From Guillardia theta CCMP2712 (lineage: Eukaryota > Protista > Cryptophyta), in NCBI RefSeq assembly GCF_000315625.1, contig NW_005434649.1, positions 248,001 through 312,000 on the forward strand: DNA of 64,000 bases, in the 5' to 3' direction. The translations under genes were made by a program, and so were the position numbers. How positions within the stretch are numbered: the stretch's first letter is position 1; every line of letters starts with the position of its first letter. Shown here piece after piece: positions 5,410 to 60,597 of the stretch. The notes below the pieces were generated by a model that was given only the letters and a program-made list of their open reading frames with translations, was not told the DNA's origin and searched no databases.

Positions 5410-6164
5410 TCTTCATGAATGTATTCCATTCAATTGCCCTCTGCGGAAACTGTAGCCGGAGTCTACATTGATCCAAGTGTAGAAAGACGACTCATAAAGT
5501 TGACAAAAATCGCCTGCGATTCCCTGAACATGCGCCTGACTCGGTTTCCTCTTCTCAACTCTTCGAATCTCCTTAGTTCTGTATCCCTCTTTTCTGCATC
5601 CTTATCACCTAACACGTTGTTCATATGCTGCCCAAAACATTTCACGAGCAACTTCACGTCTGAGCATCGCTTCGTATTGCTTTGTCCAGGCTTCAACTCC
5701 CCTGCGGGAACATTTCTCAGGGGAGTTTGTTTTTTGTCCTTTCCACAGAACCACAAATTCCATGCCGATAACGGGGTTTCCAGCTCTTCTGTCAAAAGTA
5801 CTTGTTCCAGAGCCGCCGCGCTTGCCCCAACTGCTTCATCAATAGAACCATCCGGGTCTCTGCTGTCATTCGCTCCAACAGTGTCTGCCGGTATGACGGT
5901 GCTCCCCTCACTCCTGCGACTAGACTCAACAACACTCTGTCCTGGAGCCTCAGGGTCTCTTTGCTGAACATCTCTCTGTGATCCACTTTCTTCCCCTCCC
6001 GTCTCCAGAATCACCTCCCGAATGATGGCTTTCAGCTCATCTCGATTCTCTTGCAAGCCTTGCCGAAACAAGTCCTTCGCTGATGGTCCACACTCATTTG
6101 GTATGAAACAAACTTGTCGCCTTTCCGAAACTCCTAGATTGCACTCTGGTACTCTGGTACTCAC
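5410..6164 (-). pseudogene. Degenerate GCR1_C-like / Crypton (NDC10-II) C-terminal domain relic
   Basis: ORF 5463-6164 lacks an ATG start and contains AWNLWFCG-x5-TPLRNV...KRCSDVKLLVK. Shifted frames downstream give RRGQL-x-WNTF. Family assignment is from recalled motif similarity only. Confidence 0.45.
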
Positions 6165-6285
6165 TATTTTTTTTACTTCCCCTAATAATAATAACTGTCT
6201 AAATTTTAAAATTCTTTGAGTAATGGTTATTAGATTCGCGTGACCGTAAGAATCGCTGATATTTACTACTGACTTTTATAATTGT

Positions 6286-6343
6286 CGGATGTCTCCGAGG
6301 ATACGGACTTATTTAAAAAGGGTTGTCGGGTAACTCCGTTTCC
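6286..6343. promoter_or_regulatory. Two CGG-N6-CCG putative Zn2Cys6 binding sites upstream of Zn-cluster copy 1
   Basis: CGGatgtctCCG at 6286-6297 and CGGgtaactCCG at 6327-6338. Confidence 0.5.
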
Positions 6344-6400
6344 GAAAAAATCCCGATAGAACACTGTGTGTTCCGTCAGCTTCCCTACCATCGACAGAAC

Positions 6401-7278
6401 ATGAATGCAACATCCTTCGCCATGGCTGCTTCAGAGTCCCGTCCCTTCGCTGCAGCCCCCTCCTTCCCCTCCAAGCCTCCCCGCCTCCCCTTCACTGCCT
6501 GCGACCAGTGCCGCCGATGCAAGACCCGCTGTGACGATCAAGCCCCCTGCTCTCGCTGCATCCGCTCTGGAAGGGGCGCAGCCTGCTCCCGCCTGGCGGA
6601 GGATGACATGCTGGAGATCCCGCAGTACCTGGCCGAGTACCGGCTGAGCCGTAGGGCGACCAAGGCTTGTCTGAGCTGCCAGCTCAAGAAGGTCCGCTGC
6701 GGTGACTCTCGGCCCTGCGCTCGGTGCTACCGGATGGGGCTGACGTGCGACGACGAGCCGGGGCTGGGGCAGGAGGCGCTGCCTCTGATGCTGCAGCGGA
6801 AGCGAGAGCAAGTCGTGCAGGCATGCGAGCGATGCCGGAGGTCGCGGCTCAAGTGCGACTCGGTCAGGCCATGTCGGCGGTGCGTGAGGGCNNNNNNNNN
6901 NNNNNNNNNNNNNNNNNNNNNNNNNNNNNNNNNNNNNNNNNNNNNNNNNNNNNNNNNNNNNNNNNNNNNNNNNNNNNNNNNNNNNNNNNNNGCGAGGGGT
7001 ACGCCAGGGGGGTCGGGTACAGCTGGGAGGAGCTGCTGGCGCTAGAGGGGGAGCCATCCGAGGAGCCATCGGGCACAGAGGAAGGGTCAGAGGAGGGGGA
7101 CGAGGGAGGCGCAGAGGGCTGGCTGGGGTGCTTGGAGGGGCTTGATGCTGTGGCCATGGCTCAGGGCGGGGAAGAGGAGGAGAAGCTTGGGGTCGGGAGG
7201 GGGGAGGGGGAGGAGGGAGGGTGGGCGAGCTTCCTGTGGGATCAAGGCAGCGAATTTTCTGCGTTTAGTTTGGATTGA
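6401..7278 (+). CDS. Triple Zn(II)2Cys6 transcription factor, copy 1 (spans an N gap)
   Basis: CDQC-x6-C-x5-CSRC-x8-C; CLSC-x6-C-x5-CARC-x6-C; CERC-x6-C-x5-CRRC; acidic W/L/F-rich C-terminal tail after the gap. Confidence 0.88.
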
Positions 7279-7813
7279 AGTTTTCTTTGCAATCAGACTT
7301 ACAAGATGAATGAGGGGAAGGATGTGATGTTCGTGTATGTACCCCATCAAGTATGATTGCTCGCTACACTGTGCATGGGGAATGTCAGAGCCCGTGCAGG
7401 AGAAGTTAGCGAGCTTTCTTTTCTGCAGCACACTGTGCTAGTTGGAATAGCGTAGGAGACACTATCAACTTTCTGTATCGATTGCGTTTCCTCCCTGCTG
7501 AACATCATGAACGACGTTGACAGCGACTTTCAGTATAATACTCAGTTACTTACGGTATCACATTGTGACCGTGACTCGACACTAGACTCTTCAATATTAC
7601 TGCAAGTAATTTGTTTGCAAGTTATGGCCGAAAAAAAATCTTTGACAAAGGCCTTTGCTCAAAGTTCGGAGGGTCTAGCTAGTGGACGGGGAATGATGGG
7701 GGACCGTACACTAGCGCCACAAGTCTCCGGAAATTACAACTATTATTGCAGGAACCTAAAATTTACACGTGACCATGACATGAACCGTGATGTTTACTAC
7801 TGAAGAGATCTTT

Positions 7814-7830
7814 CGGGTAATTCCGTTTCC
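7814..7830. promoter_or_regulatory. CGG-N6-CCG site upstream of Zn-cluster copy 2
   Basis: CGGgtaattCCGtttcc, matching the element upstream of copies 1 and 3. Confidence 0.5.
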
Positions 7831-7896
7831 CCGAAAGTATAAAAATAGTGTGATGACCCAATCCGTACGGTGGACTGGCGGCATACACTGGTATCC

Positions 7897-8772
7897 ATGC
7901 TCAAAGCTCAGCCCCATCCCTTCGCTGCAGCCCCCTCCTTCCCCTCCAAGCCTCCCCGCCTCCCCTTCACTGCCTGCGACCAGTGCCGCCGATGCAAGAC
8001 CCGCTGTGACGATCAAGCCCCCTGCTCTCGCTGCGTCCGCTCTGGCTTGGGAGCAGCCTGCTCCCGCCTGGCGGAGGATGACATGCTGGAGATCCCGCAG
8101 TACCTGGCCGAGTACCGGCTGAGCCGTAGGGCGACCAAGGCTTGTCTGAGCTGCCAGCTCAAGAAGGTCCGCTGCGGCGACTCTCGGCCCTGCGCTCGGT
8201 GCTACCGGATGGGGCTGACATGCGACGACGAGGCGGGGCTGGGGCAGGAGGCGCTGCCTCTGATGCTGCAGCGGAAGCGAGAGCAAGTCGTGCAGGCATG
8301 CGAGCGATGCCGGAGGTCGCGGCTCAAGTGCGACTCGGTCAGGCCATGTCGGCGGTGCGTGAGGGCGGAGGAGGNNNNNNNNNNNNNNNNNNNNNNNNNN
8401 NNNNNNNNNNNNNNNNNNNNNNNNNNNNNNNNNNNNNNNNNNNNNNNNNNNNNNNNNNNNNNNNNNNNNNNNNNCGGGGGGAGGAAGGAGAGCGTCATGG
8501 GCACCGGCGAGGGGTACGCCAGGGGGGTCGGGTACAGCTGGGAGGAGCTGCTGGCGCTAGAGGGGGAGCCATCCGAGGAGCCATCGGGCACAGAGGAAGG
8601 GTCAGAGGAGGGGGACGAGGGAGGCGCAGAGGGCTGGCTGGGGTGCTTGGAGGGGCTTGATGCTGTGGCCATGGCTCAGGGCGGGGAAGAGGAGGAGAAG
8701 CTTGGGGTCGGGAGGGGGGAGGGGGAGGAGGGAGGGTGGGCGAGCTTCCTGTGGGAGGAGGAGGAGCCGTGA
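7897..8772 (+). CDS. Triple Zn(II)2Cys6 transcription factor, copy 2 (spans an N gap)
   Basis: Same three Zn2Cys6 motifs and acidic tail ending WASFLWEEEEP*. Confidence 0.88.
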   Translation: MLKAQPHPFAAAPSFPSKPPRLPFTACDQCRRCKTRCDDQAPCSRCVRSGLGAACSRLAEDDMLEIPQYLAEYRLSRRATKACLSCQLKKVRCGDSRPCARCYRMGLTCDDEAGLGQEALPLMLQRKREQVVQACERCRRSRLKCDSVRPCRRCVRAEEXXXXXXXXXXXXXXXXXXXXXXXXXXXXXXXXXXGGRKESVMGTGEGYARGVGYSWEELLALEGEPSEEPSGTEEGSEEGDEGGAEGWLGCLEGLDAVAMAQGGEEEEKLGVGRGEGEEGGWASFLWEEEEP

Positions 8773-9760
8773 GGATGCTTTGCGGATGGGCTTGGACGTG
8801 GACGGGTTTTCAGGAGAGATCTCGCAGCGGCAGGAGGGAGAAGGAGCGGCGAGCGGGGGGATGAATGTCGACGTGAGATTGGGGATGGGGGAGGGCTGTA
8901 GAGGAGGGGGAGGCTTCTGCAGGGAGGGATCTAGAGATCATCAGAATCCCAGAGGTGAACCATCCTCCTGAGGTGGGGCGACTGTGAGCAATGTTTCAAT
9001 GAAACTGGATTGGTGCATTGATAGTATTATGAGTAAAGCCATCAGGACATGACATCGACTATGTTTCGCAACGCTTTCTGCAACGTCCATTTTCTCAAGC
9101 CACATCCGAGCCGTTTGTAGTCTTGCCGTCATTTCTTATTTGAAAGGTTTGCTTTGATACATTTCGTTTAGGTTCAAGCACTATTGTGACTCAAGATTCT
9201 GGAGTTCTTTTCTTCAATTTTCTGCTGGTCGATCGCTCGGGTTCTTGTACCTTACATACAATCATATTTGCTTTGATCGGCCTCTGTCCTCTCTATGGAT
9301 CGTCTCAAAACCTGATCACCGTTAACCCACCGCTACCTCATCTGCAAAGACTTTCATTCATTCTCTGGATTATCTACCTTGATGCTCATCATCATGTGCT
9401 TGATGCTGTGACAGTCACTGCCTGAGTCTCGTTGCCATTTTGACATGGCCGTCGCTCCGATATCTTCAAACAAAATGAGTCGTGACTGAACGGATATCCC
9501 GACGTGCGATTAATCGAAAATCTCCACAGTTCCAAAAAAAACAAAAGCATGACGACGCCGCTTTCCAGTAGAAACTTCTACCGGAATCGGAGAACCCTGC
9601 TTGCCGAATCTTTTACTACTAAACCCGCCGCTTTACTTCTCGCCCTCGCCCGTGCTTGCCATTTGCTCCGGAAAATACAACTATTATTGCAGGAACCGGG
9701 CAACAAGTAAAGTGACAAAGTCATTCACCGTGATGTTTACTACTGAAGAGATCTTTCAGG

Positions 9761-9777
9761 CGGGTAATTCCGTTTCC
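9761..9777. promoter_or_regulatory. CGG-N6-CCG site upstream of Zn-cluster copy 3
   Basis: CGGgtaattCCGtttcc. Confidence 0.5.
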
Positions 9778-9832
9778 CACGAAAGTGTAGAGAAGCAGAT
9801 GGGTGACAATGATCTGGTATCCACTGGTATCC

Positions 9833-10729
9833 ATGCTCAGAGCTCAGCCCCATCCCTTCGCTGCAGCCCCCTCCTTCCCCTCCAAGCCTCCCCGCCTCCC
9901 CTTCACTGCCTGCGACCAGTGCCGCCGATGCAAGACCCGCTGTGACGATCAAGCCCCCTGCTCTCGCTGCGTCCGCTCTGGCTTGGGAGCAGCCTGCTCC
10001 CGCCTGGCGGAGGATGACATGCTGGAGATCCCGCAGTACCTGGCCGAGTACCGGCTGAGCCGTAGGGCGACCAAGGCTTGTCTGAGCTGCCAGCTCAAGA
10101 AGGTCCGCTGCGGTGACTCTCGGCCCTGCGCTCGGTGCTACCGGATGGGGCTGACGTGCGACGACGAGCCGGGGCTGGGGCAGGAGGCGCTGCCTCTGAT
10201 GCTGCAGCGGAAGCGAGAGCAAGTCGTGCAGGCATGCGAGCGATGCCGGAGGTCGCGGCTCAAGTGCGACTCGGTCAGGCCATACGGCGGTGCGTGAGGG
10301 CGGAGGAAGAGTGCGTGGACCGGCAGGTGAAGCGGCAACGGAGCGGGGGGAGGAAGGAGAGCGTCATGGGCACCGGCGAGGGGTACGCCAGGGGNNNNNN
10401 NNNNNNNNNNNNNNNNNNNNNNNNNNNNNNNNNNNNNNNNNNNNNNNNNNNNNNNNNNNNNNNNNNNNNNNNNNNNNNNNNNNNNNNNNNNNNNCTGGGA
10501 GGAGCTGCTGGCGCTAGAGGGGGAGCCATCCGAGGAGCCATCGGGCACAGAGGAAGGGTCAGAGGAGGGGGACGAGGGAGGCGCAGAGGGCTGGCTGGGG
10601 TGCTTGGAGGGGCTTGATGCTGTGGCCATGGCTCAGGGCGGGGAAGAGGAGGAGAAGCTTGGGGTCGGGAGGGGGGAGGGGGAGGAGGGAGGGTGGGCGA
10701 GCTTCCTGTGGGAGGAGGAGGAGCCGTGA
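9833..10729 (+). pseudogene. Triple Zn(II)2Cys6 transcription factor, copy 3, frameshifted in the third cluster
   Basis: CCATGTCGG in copies 1 and 2 reads CCATACGG here (about 10280-10288), giving a premature TGA at 10295-10297; the downstream coding sequence is intact in another frame. Confidence 0.75.
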
Positions 10730-11075
10730 GGATGCTTTGCGGAGGGGCTTGGACGTGGACGGGTTTTCAGGAGAGATCTCGCTGCGGCAGGAGGGAGAAG
10801 GAGCGGCGAGCGGGGGGATGATGGTCGACGTGAGATTGGGGATGGGAGAGGGCTGTAGAGGAGGGGGAGGCTTCGGCAGGGAGGGATCGCTTCCTGTGGG
10901 AGCATGAGGAGCTTTGAGGAGGAAGAGGAGGAGGAGCGAATTTGCATCGGGAAGGAGGTGGGTCGCATGTGGGACGGGGGTTCAGGAGCGCTCGGAGGCC
11001 GGAGAAGGAGGGACGAGGAGGGGGATGGAGTTCGATGTGAGATTGGGGATGGGGGAGGGCTGTAGAGGAGGGGAT
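10701..11075 (+). repeat. Degenerate tandem duplication (about 190 bp) of the copy 3 3' end
   Basis: GCTTCCTGTGGGAG at 10701 and 10889; GTGAGATTGGGGATGGG(A/G)GAGGGCTGTAGAGGAGGGG at about 10830 and 11037. Confidence 0.7.
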
Positions 11076-19297: not shown

Positions 19298-20119
19298 CGT
19301 ATGAAACCTAACCTGCAGCAAAGTCAGGATTTCGTCCGCTACACCTCAAATGAAGTGAGAAGATTGAAGACGACAAGTTAGATGTGAAGAAATCAAACAA
19401 TATCAGATGTCAGACTGCGATTATCCTCGAATCTTCATCGCAAGACATTCTTCTAAACACTCTTGCACCGCTGTCCTTTACAGCATCATACCATTCGGGC
19501 TGAATAAGCTGGATCTACACTCGCTTCTTGTCCTCGAGCTACTAATGCTACATCTTCTTGGAATCATAAGCACGTGGGACGAGCTCTCAGCTTCAGCTTC
19601 TTCTTCCGCCTCCTCCTCCCGCCTCCCCGTTCGCCCATCTGCCATTCGGAGCGATGACGCCATGGGGAACGTGTGTGTGACGCTCTGTGAATGGCTTTTA
19701 AAACTTTATTTTAAAATATCAAGCACTGTTTAATAGTACCTTTTTAAAATTGGTACAAATTAAATCTATTTCTGCATTGTTTATAAATTTTTGTTATTGG
19801 TTTTCGCGTTTTAAAATATTGTAGAGAGCTTTCTTCCCCGGATTAACACAGACCCAAACGCAGTACAAACAACATGCCGAGGCGAGCTGGCAGCTTCATT
19901 TAGGACCGCTCGTCACAACAATTTGAACTGGCGTCCGAAGGGCCTCAGGGAACCGGCGATTCACGGAGGGAACCCGCGAGCCTCGGACAGACAGGCTGTC
20001 TTCCTTGCCTGCCACCCACCGCCGGAGCTCCGGCTGACAGTCACTGTCACAAGATCTTTTACTTTTACTTCATCATTTAGGCACGGTGCGGCACCGTCAC
20101 CATCGATCGGAACTTGGCA

Positions 20120-20540
20120 ATGATGGCGCGGCCCGGGCCACGATCATCGGATTACCTCAGTGTCCGACCGGGCACTTCCGAGTGTACGCTGAGAGCCGGG
20201 CAGACTGAGACTCGGACCGTGCCGTGACTGCGGCGTGGCACGCCGCCCGGCCGCGCCAGACCGTCCAACTTACGCATGGCCGGCCGGGCTGAGGGCGGCC
20301 CCGGCCCGGGCCGAGTGACCGTACGGTGTCCGAGCCCGCCGTCATCAGGCCCGGGGCATCGTCGCCGCTCGCCGGGCCGGCCGGGAGTCCGACGGTGCGG
20401 CCCGGACCGTACCGCACGCGGCGGCAGGCTAGGCTCAAAGCATCGGATACTTGAAATCGGGGCCGCCGCTGGCCCCGGCCCGTGACGGACCGTGCCCGGC
20501 GATGGCTACGTACCTGGCCGGCAAGCCAGCACGGTACGTA
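20120..20540. other. Very GC-rich, palindrome-rich non-coding island in the divergent spacer between AMT and the Cys-rich gene
   Basis: Dense GGCCCGG/CCGGG words and no credible ORF; terminal hairpin TACGTACC-TGGC..GCCA-GGTACGTA at 20507-20540. Confidence 0.55.
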
Positions 20541-25385: not shown

Positions 25386-25576
25386 ACTCGTTGGAAGTTG
25401 ATTTTCGGGACACACCCATTTACTACCCCTCGTCCCGTATAGTTCACCCAGGGGTGGAGTCAACACCCTGTGCGATATAAAGTAAAGTCCTTTCACCGCG
25501 GCGCCTGCGAGTCCGAGGTATCCATGGTAAGAGCATAGTCGTCGCCTCCCGCCTCTGTACTCATCGAACCTGCACC

Positions 25577-59060: not shown

Positions 59061-60597
59061 GAGGAAGACGATCCTGTTATAGGTCACTTCGCCGCCTGTA
59101 CCAAAACAAGTCAGAATTAGCTGAGGCACTCTTTGAAACTCGGACTAGAGAATTTTGGAATCTCTCCCTGACACCATTAGTTTTCTAAACAGATACCGAC
59201 CGTGTCGCTCACATTCATGATCAACATAAAAAAAGATGTCATGTGCACACATTGGTATGCACAATCCTAATGGTTGGAGATAGACTGCAGTAATACATCC
59301 TATACTTTTCCCCTCCATCCCTGTCTCACTATTGAACTAGCACCCGATTTTCCCCTTTGGCTGCAAGAATGTGCAAAAGCGATCAACCGAGCTCTAATCA
59401 ATCAGTCAATCCTGCAGTCACCCCAATCTTCAAATCCACTGTCACCCGAATCTCCTGACGATTTTAGCTCTTTCGATCTCAACCCTTGCCCTTCCATCAA
59501 ACATCCCGCTCTCAAACACTGAGTCCCTCGCTCATCCCGGCTGCTCAACCACGTTCCGTCTCTATCAACACCACCATCTGCTCTCGTCATCAATGTCTCC
59601 TGTGCCCAGCATTCTTTGTGTGCTGCTTTTGCAATCTCCTCCTCTTCCTGCCTCGTATCGTGTCTCTACCCTCCTGCATGCGCAACCAAACACGCAATCT
59701 CAGGACCCCTTGACGTTCTCGCCACCTTCATCAGTACCCCTACCCGTTTAATGACCTTGTCAGACATATTTCCACAACCGGTACTAAGAATGACTTAGGT
59801 ACCCCTACCCCCTAATCAGACTCACGTTTCAAAAATGATAATCTGAATGATCACCCTACCCCACCCCTCACCATGGTAAAACCCCACCCGGAGAGACTAC
59901 CCCCAATTTCCCACCCACATCTGGCTAAATCCAGAATTGCCCCACCCCACCCCACCCCTCTGCATCGTAATGATGCTCACCAAAGTGAGTCCAGTTCCAC
60001 TTCCAAAGATTGACTACCCCTCCTGGAGTATTTTCCACCCCACCCCTCAGTGTCCAATCCCTTCTACGCCGACTAGATTGTTCTCCATCATGAACACCAT
60101 TTGGGACTCCTACCCCACCCCTACTTTACTGTGTTGATCAGGGGGTACCTTCAACGGGATAAATGTCTCCGTCCCCTTCCTCCTCCCCCACTTCCCCTCG
60201 TGGACCCCACCACCCCCTTTTCCAATGACCCCGCCGTTTTACTACCCCTACGGTATCTCAGCAGCAACTACCCTACCTCACCGAAATTGGCCACCTATTT
60301 CCGTTTTACATGTTTTACAGTAAATTTATAGCATATCCGACCATACTCTGAATCTGCAGTATCTCCATTTTATTTATTGCAATCTCCCATAAATATTGCA
60401 ATATCTGTGCAGTAAAATCCCCAACTCAGTCCTTGAAGTTCGGAGCTGGAGACCGGGTGGTTCCTGACAGTTACAATACGTTTCTTGTGCATCATAAGCC
60501 CTCTTCCCCCCACTGCCCCAACACATACCCGTACCCGTACATTCTCCGGTCAAATAGGGGGTAATGCTGTTGAAGGTGGAGGAGCTGTCGGGGAGCC

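Follow-up and report, generated by a model that had tools for sequence, protein, structure and literature searches.

In the cryptophyte Guillardia theta CCMP2712, three tandem genes for proteins with Zn2Cys6 zinc clusters share a short conserved promoter block, CGGGTAAYTCCGTTTCC, in which two inverted CGG triplets stand six nucleotides (nt) apart (CGG-N6-CCG). The genes, here called c1, c2 and c3, are apparently intronless and lie on the + strand of a 64,000-nt stretch of scaffold JH992989.1, to which we refer as the window. The block is found 72-83 base pairs (bp) upstream of the ATG in all 3 genes, and the window contains no further copy. Its conservation, its association with the gene family and its homology with the promoter of a paralogous array are established; from these we infer that a protein binds it, which protein this may be, in which direction regulation may go and where transcription may start. 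With middling confidence, the block is read as a real cis-regulatory island, a derived form, peculiar to this array, of a promoter module that the whole family shares, and most likely recognised by a zinc-cluster protein. Its binding by the proteins of the family itself is plausible, and is proposed more tentatively.

Conservation of the block in the three promoters

An earlier note on this DNA had described a conserved CGG-N6-CCG sequence before the three start codons. The corresponding 17-mer is indeed present, as CGGGTAACTCCGTTTCC at 6327-6343 (c1) and as CGGGTAATTCCGTTTCC at 7814-7830 (c2) and 9761-9777 (c3), and the distances from block to ATG are 74, 83 and 72 nt, respectively. When up to 3 mismatches are allowed, 3 matches are found in the 64 kb versus 0.14 expected, a number reached in none of 100 shuffles. 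The bare CGG-N6-CCG pattern is not enriched across the whole window (14 found versus 11 expected).

The upstream regions of c1 and c2 were compared by local alignment, using as a null 300 dinucleotide shuffles (mean score 18.8, maximum 28). The sole significant similarities are TCGGGTAAYTCCGTTTCC, with a score of 31, and a segment running from CGTGACC to TGATRTTTACTACTGA, with a score of 30. Between these blocks, above them and down to the ATG, the DNA of the two genes aligns at the level of shuffled sequences, in agreement with the remark of the earlier note that the upstream DNA is otherwise divergent, especially that of the first copy. Two islands are defined by these similarities. Island I2, comprising CGG-N6-CCG and GTTTCC, corresponds to TCGGGTAACTCCGTTTCC in c1 (6326..6343, + strand), TCGGGTAATTCCGTTTCC in c2 (7813..7830, +) and GCGGGTAATTCCGTTTCC in c3 (9760..9777, +; from sequence comparison and an X3 contig). 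Island I1, the second block that had been noticed in all three regions, contains TGATRTTTACTACTGA, starting at 6257, 7788 and 9731, and reads TGATATTTACTACTGA in c1 (6257..6272, +) and TGATGTTTACTACTGA in both c2 (7788..7803, +) and c3 (9731..9746, +). In c1, it includes the 8-mer TTTACTAC (6262-6269), which is associated with the family, as described below.

In the comparison of c2 with c3, I1 and I2 are 100% identical and the coding regions 99% identical, whereas 7838-7880 is only about 50% identical, with a 10-nt indel. The distance between the two islands is 54 nt in c1, 10 nt in c2 and 14 nt in c3, while the spacing within I2 is constant; a variable distance combined with a fixed interior is the behaviour of separate protein-binding modules. 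Conservation extends over the whole 18-mer of I2, spacer included, beyond the CGG triplets, and I1 contains no CGG. The X3 contigs covering the motif of c2 (7785-7934) and that of c3 (9728-9870) show no differences from the window; contig coverage does not include the motif of c1.

The 54-nt spacer between I1 and I2, specific to c1, contains an additional palindromic site, TCGGATGTCTCCGA (6285..6298, +), 29 nt upstream of I2. It had been singled out before as a second site of the first copy, and is the only TCGG-N6-CCGA of the window. Its minus-strand sequence includes CGGAGA, the half-site of the family element CGGAGA-N10-CCG (see below). Two further candidates were discarded: a third CCG after I2, found at N3 in c1 and N5 in c2 and missing in c3, has a varying spacing, and the spacing of an outer palindrome, TCGG...CCGA (N12, N14), is not conserved.

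A TATA-like box, TATAAAAATA (7838..7847, +), read from the sequence and of presumed function, starts 8 nt downstream of I2 in c2. In c1 an A-rich segment (6344-6351) takes its place, and in c3 the box is degenerate (GTGTAGAGAAG versus TATAAAAATAG in c2). Upstream ATGs, out of frame, occur between block and start codon at 7853 in c2 and at 9799 and 9809 in c3. Together with the TATA-like box of c2, they suggest that transcription begins downstream of the block. Above the two islands, CGTGACC is found upstream of c1 (6239..6245, +) and c2 (7768..7774, +), and a further island, I0, is shared by c2 (7725..7756, +) and c3 (9666..9697, +) only, in copies 97% identical. Since the promoter of c2 and c3 continues upstream into I0, the motif is interior to it; no inverted repeat brackets the gene units, so that the idea that the motif might mark the ends of a mobile element was abandoned.

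A promoter code shared with paralogous genes

Relatives of the three genes with upstream DNA were sought by a word-based protein search, which returned three G. theta loci and a 2.2-kb contig from the European Nucleotide Archive (ENA) only. Besides the array of the window, four lineages are distinguished. Lineage A (L001) is an array of at least 7 near-identical genes plus 1 edge variant; lineage B (L002) comprises 2 genes; lineage C (L004) shares the scaffold of the window; lineage D (L003) is the metagenome contig, 49% identical. The same search also returned Hanusia phi transcripts, without DNA, and unrelated single-cluster proteins (P0008-P0012). A scan of JGI metagenomes gave no relatives. 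In L002 and L004, the NCBI models GUITHDRAFT_118770 and GUITHDRAFT_106548 lack the 5' part of the true open reading frames (ORFs), which encode 262 and 279 amino acids (aa) with 3 clusters each; the second L002 copy is hidden inside a 262-aa multi-exon model. The corrected ORFs are located at L002:9793-10578, L002:13174-13959 and L004:9668-10504; an exact-protein look-up of these L002 and L004 ORFs gave no matches.

The code recognised in the promoters of the family combines TTTACTAC with an inverted CGG pair, as in CGGAGA-N10-CCG (element E2). E2 occurs 11 times in the window, L001, L002 and L004 taken together (about 126 kb), with an expectation of 0.77 per 64 kb. All 11 share the strand of a family gene and precede its ATG by 69-245 nt; there are none elsewhere in the same DNA, and every family gene of L001, L002 and L004 has one upstream. 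The only match of the window, CGGAGAACCCTGCTTGCCG (9588..9606, +), lies 245 nt before the ATG of c3. Because the pattern had been fixed beforehand on the other loci, this match is an independent confirmation, with an estimated p of about 0.014 for an occurrence in the 3 promoters. L001 and L002/L004 have different spacer sequences in E2 but the same triplets at the same distance. The evidence for E2 lies in the occurrence of the pattern and not in alignment, since the ungapped match of 14 of 21 positions between L001 and L002 would be expected about 29 times by chance, by our estimate. The spacing found family-wide is N13, and N6 is confined to the array of the window.

The 8-mer TTTACTAC is found 6 times in the window versus 0.27 expected, 4 of the 6 in the promoters described here, and its 8 occurrences in the other loci all adjoin family genes. 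It is the only 8-mer common to 4 of the 7 promoter lineages, a result matched by 1.3% of shuffles. In c3, a second copy (9612..9619, +) follows E2 at a distance of 5 nt. A third shared element, CGTGACC, is weaker, and is present in the promoters of c1, c2, L002 and L004. More generally, inverted CGG...CCG pairs with N<=14 were found in 8 of 8 family promoters versus 34% of random 300-bp windows.

The promoter of c2 and c3 is homologous to that of L001: both contain the collinear chain TTTACTAC, GAGATCTT and TTCCGT, reached in 1 of 400 shuffles for c2 and in none of 400 for c3. The module reads TTTACTAC-A-CGGAGATCTTCAGTTTCCG in L001 and TTTACTAC-TGA-AGAGATCTTT-CGGGTAATTCCG in c2. The proteins of paralogues with related promoter elements are only 57-69% identical.

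TTTACTAC is also seen in the window at 25419-25430 and 60238-60249, in both cases extended as TTTACTACCCCT. An ATG preceding GTAAG lies about 105 nt downstream of the site at 25419, and the interval contains TATAAAG. Repeats similar to ACTACCCCT are clustered at 59.7-60.3 kb (59733-60249), and ACTACCCCTAC is present in the promoters of L002 too.

Encoded proteins and comparison with known zinc-cluster factors

The earlier note had spoken of a three-cluster Zn2Cys6 protein, and 3 PF00172 (Zn_clus) domains were found in each of the 3 ORFs, with scores of 71.8, 68.1 and 66.6 bits versus a cut-off of 21. All 3 encoded proteins contain the pattern CX2CX6CX5-12CX2CX6-8C above the Pfam cut-off, the cluster cysteines are invariant among paralogues, and the C-terminal tails of the c1, c2 and c3 products are acidic and tryptophan-rich. 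The recognition helices of all 3 clusters are nearly invariant across clades. Given such DNA-reading helices, a shared type of site would be expected if the family regulates itself, and CGGAGA-N10-CCG fits this expectation better than N6.

Most known zinc-cluster factors are fungal, and fungal homodimers read paired CGG sites. Yeast Ppr1 is a homodimer whose chains each contain 1 cluster and a coiled coil, and binds an upstream site of the form CGG-N6-CCG. The sites of the array resemble those of Ppr1 and of the Gal4 family in having inverted CGG triplets exactly 6 bp apart (6327, 7814, 9761 and 6286), and the additional site of c1, TCGG-N6-CCGA, also shares its palindromic flanks with the site of Ppr1. 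The Guillardia chain differs from Ppr1 in carrying 3 clusters and in having no confidently predicted dimerisation helix, features from which it appears not to be a Ppr1-like homodimer. N6 is moreover limited to the array in spite of nearly invariant recognition helices, while the family uses N13. The likeness to a PPR1-type site, proposed earlier, holds for the spacing of the triplets, but neither for the architecture of the protein nor for conservation of that spacing. An AlphaFold2 model of P0002, with a mean predicted local distance difference test (pLDDT) score of 48, was used for secondary structure only. Its tail is acidic and of low confidence or disordered; beyond cluster 3, helices reach at most 16 residues, with pLDDT <55; as the model is poor, it indicates the absence of a coiled coil only weakly.

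Fungal zinc-cluster activators such as AlcR, Pdr3, Yrr1 and AflR reportedly regulate their own promoters, with binding and feedback documented experimentally. The genes described here are similar in that a factor gene has candidate sites of its own family type in the proximal promoter, conserved above background, as would be expected of an autoregulatory loop. They differ in belonging to a cryptophyte and in forming multi-copy arrays of near-identical genes, and their candidate sites are known from sequence conservation. Self-regulation fits the conserved block, which is not proof of it. If true, it would be a cryptophyte variant of the fungal theme, with 3 clusters per chain and arrays homogenised by gene conversion.

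Among DNA-binding domains of solved structure, the closest by sequence is that of Schizosaccharomyces pombe Pho7 (PDB 6o19, 6e33), matching cluster 3 with E = 5e-4. Pho7, a Zn2Cys6 protein, binds DNA as a monomer; its footprint of 14 bp is asymmetric and surrounds a single CGG, and its consensus is TCG(G/C)(A/T)xxTTxAA (PMC6265462). When this consensus was compared by eye with I2, E2 and TTTACTAC-N-CGG, on both strands, no match beyond TCGG was noticed. Pho7 has a single cluster, versus 3 in the Guillardia chain. A monomer occupying a long site makes long, fully specified sites plausible, and this fits the conservation of the 18-mer, as well as TTTACTAC-N-CGG in L001 and L004. No paper joining Guillardia with Zn2Cys6 was found in the literature.

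Possible origin and reading of the block

Relative to the module of L001, TTTACTAC-A-CGGAGATCTTCAGTTTCCG, the left CGG has decayed in the array of the window (AAGAGATCTT), and an insertion of 4-9 nt has brought a new CGG to a distance of 6 nt from the retained CCG. Loss of the left CGG with gain of a new one looks like binding-site turnover. The site would then be read by a zinc-cluster protein, plausibly one of the family's own products, resulting in auto- or cross-regulation, and this reader would act immediately upstream of the TATA-like box. The promoters drift, whereas the coding regions appear to be held at 98-99% identity, probably through gene conversion.

A more elaborate model, which we regard as a long shot, is that triple-Zn2Cys6 chains bind composite sites as monomers, and that the arrays form a self- and cross-activating network in which sites turn over and proteins stay constant. 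Two clusters would take the CGG...CCG pair, with N13 in most promoters and N6 here, and a Pho7-like third cluster would take the adjacent TTTACTAC.

Several points weigh against a conserved island read by a zinc-cluster protein. Neither CGG-N6-CCG nor the 17-mer or the 12-mer is found within 300-400 bp upstream of the genes of L001, L002, L003 and L004, which makes the spacing called PPR1-type specific to this array; within the array the site is kept above background, as had been suggested (scores of 31 and 30, with no shuffle above 28), but it is not kept across lineages A-D, and by the criterion for refutation given in the earlier note N6 is no feature of the family as a whole. Standard local alignment of promoters between clades gave no significant result, and the CGGAGA-N10-CCG pattern was defined on L001, L002 and L004 after inspection of the data. 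Few lineages are effectively independent, namely W1, W2/3, A, B/C and D. Of the 34 island positions 2 differ, much the same proportion as in the coding DNA, which has diverged by 2%, and patchy replacement after a recent duplication keeps some probability because the flanks are unalignable. Finally, conservation of the whole 18-mer and the lack of CGG in I1 would be explained equally well by other factors.

The last point leads to the strongest of the alternatives, on balance doubtful, that the islands bind an unrelated factor, such as a Myb-type protein on the minus strand (AAC(G/T)G of C[C/A]GTTTCC) or a reader of TTTACTAC, the CGG-N6-CCG symmetry being incidental. Where I2 aligns with the L001 promoter, the sequence TTC[C/A]GTTTCC can be read, and its complement, GGAAAC[G/T]G, presumably fits the Myb core. 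A factor of this kind would account for the conservation of the spacer, and for the fact that the most widely shared 8-mer, TTTACTAC, is free of CGG and is found also at the 2 unrelated places, 25419 and 60238. It would leave unexplained why c1 gained a second CGG-N6-CCG of unrelated sequence, and why CGGAGA-N10-CCG keeps triplets and spacing despite a differing spacer, as is typical of zinc-cluster sites. Less probable still is that no selection is involved, the islands being either leftovers of a recently duplicated promoter, otherwise overwritten by indels, or very short conversion patches. The coding regions of c1 and c2 are 98% identical and the islands 94%, values that are indistinguishable; the flanks are unalignable rather than measurably diverged; and c2 and c3 are very recent copies. 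Under such a scheme, however, replacement would have occurred several times independently, and each time precisely both blocks would have had to escape it; c2 and c3 again keep these blocks perfectly beside DNA about 50% identical, and the recurrence of related elements in the promoters of paralogues as distant as those described above would not be expected.

The block might also belong to the core promoter, to the region of the transcription start or to the 5' untranslated region, instead of being an activator site. Its nearly constant distance from the ATG would favour this, and TTTACTAC resembles what we take to be an initiator-like sequence, Y-Y-A-N-W. On the other hand, out-of-frame ATGs at 7853, 9799 and 9809 lie between block and start codon, the TATA-like box of c2 is downstream of the block, and E2 varies in position among paralogues from 69 to 245 nt upstream. 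As to an RNA element, there were no Rfam matches and no folds better than those of shuffled sequences. We judge this explanation the least probable of the three.

A zinc-cluster site derived from a family-wide module is thus preferred, and the family appears as a tandem-array family with a recognisable promoter code of its own, made of TTTACTAC and an inverted CGG pair, of which N6 is a local variant. With the sites described here, the idea of self-regulation can be tested directly; as long as only the letters of the DNA are considered, the block is a conserved promoter element of an ordinary kind, to which an attractive hypothesis has been added. The cryptophyte three-cluster family would offer a simple system in which multi-cluster DNA reading, and the turnover of sites under concerted evolution, may be followed.

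Structure of the three genes and assembly gaps

Gene c1 extends over 6401..7278 (+), with ATG at 6401 and a second in-frame ATG at 6422; c2, encoding 269 aa, over 7897..8772 (+), with ATG at 7897; and c3 over 9833..10729 (+), with ATG at 9833 and the homologous frame continuing to 10729. Counted from 6436 on, c1 and c2 are identical at 446 of 456 DNA positions; c2 and c3 are identical at 427 of 430, and tblastn of c1 versus c2 gives 94%. In c3, 1 nt is missing near 10284, within the third zinc cluster (10280-10297: ccata-cggcgg in c3 versus ccatgtcggcgg in c1 and c2), which leads to a stop at 10295-10297 and a 154-aa product, P0001. Because of this loss of frame and of the degenerate TATA-like box, c3 may be a young pseudogene, barring an assembly error.

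Each gene contains an assembly gap. Those of c1 (6892-6991) and c2 (8375-8474) fall in DNA coding for the third cluster, outside the promoters; that of c3 is at 10396-10495. The c2 gap is bridged by X1 and X2 contigs, which pass from 8373 to 8475 through 35 letters equal to 10309-10343 of c3; its true length is therefore 35 nt, in frame, giving the 269-aa product. For the c1 gap, no bridge was found among the contigs of the runs examined, and the frame is kept provided that its length is 74 nt, the value of c3. The X1 and X2 contigs are confined to genic parts, and are therefore probably RNA. None of 25 raw RNA reads was informative on the transcription start, and the X1 and X2 contigs begin at 7917, in coding DNA.

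Other features of the window and of L001

An ORF on the minus strand (5463-6164) is arranged head-to-head with c1, and 5900-6116 is covered by an X1 contig. A Pfam search with this ORF gave nothing at E<=1, except for a sub-threshold antitoxin-like match, and so lends no backing to a GCR1_C/Crypton identity. In the spacer between c2 and c3, 14 RNA molecules of run X7 (9494-9553) end at 9553, after an A-rich segment (9534-9546); they may mark a 3' end, result from internal priming or belong to a separate transcript. A cluster of 6 CGG-N6-CCG and 4 CGG-N13-CCG at 20100-20420 was set aside as a base-composition effect of a CpG- and GC-rich stretch, unrelated to the conserved block.

A G-rich module of 78 nt is found 3' of the stop codons, once after c2 (8832-8909) and twice after c3 (10789-10866 and 10996-11073); an X3 contig connects a copy of the 8909 type to the sequence at 11074. 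In L001 (299-400 and 5186-5290), an N-terminal coding repeat, MMPLAVPPRPS, is present in 2 or 3 units depending on the copy, and in the edge copy, the gene at 299, part of this repeat lies in the 5' flank.

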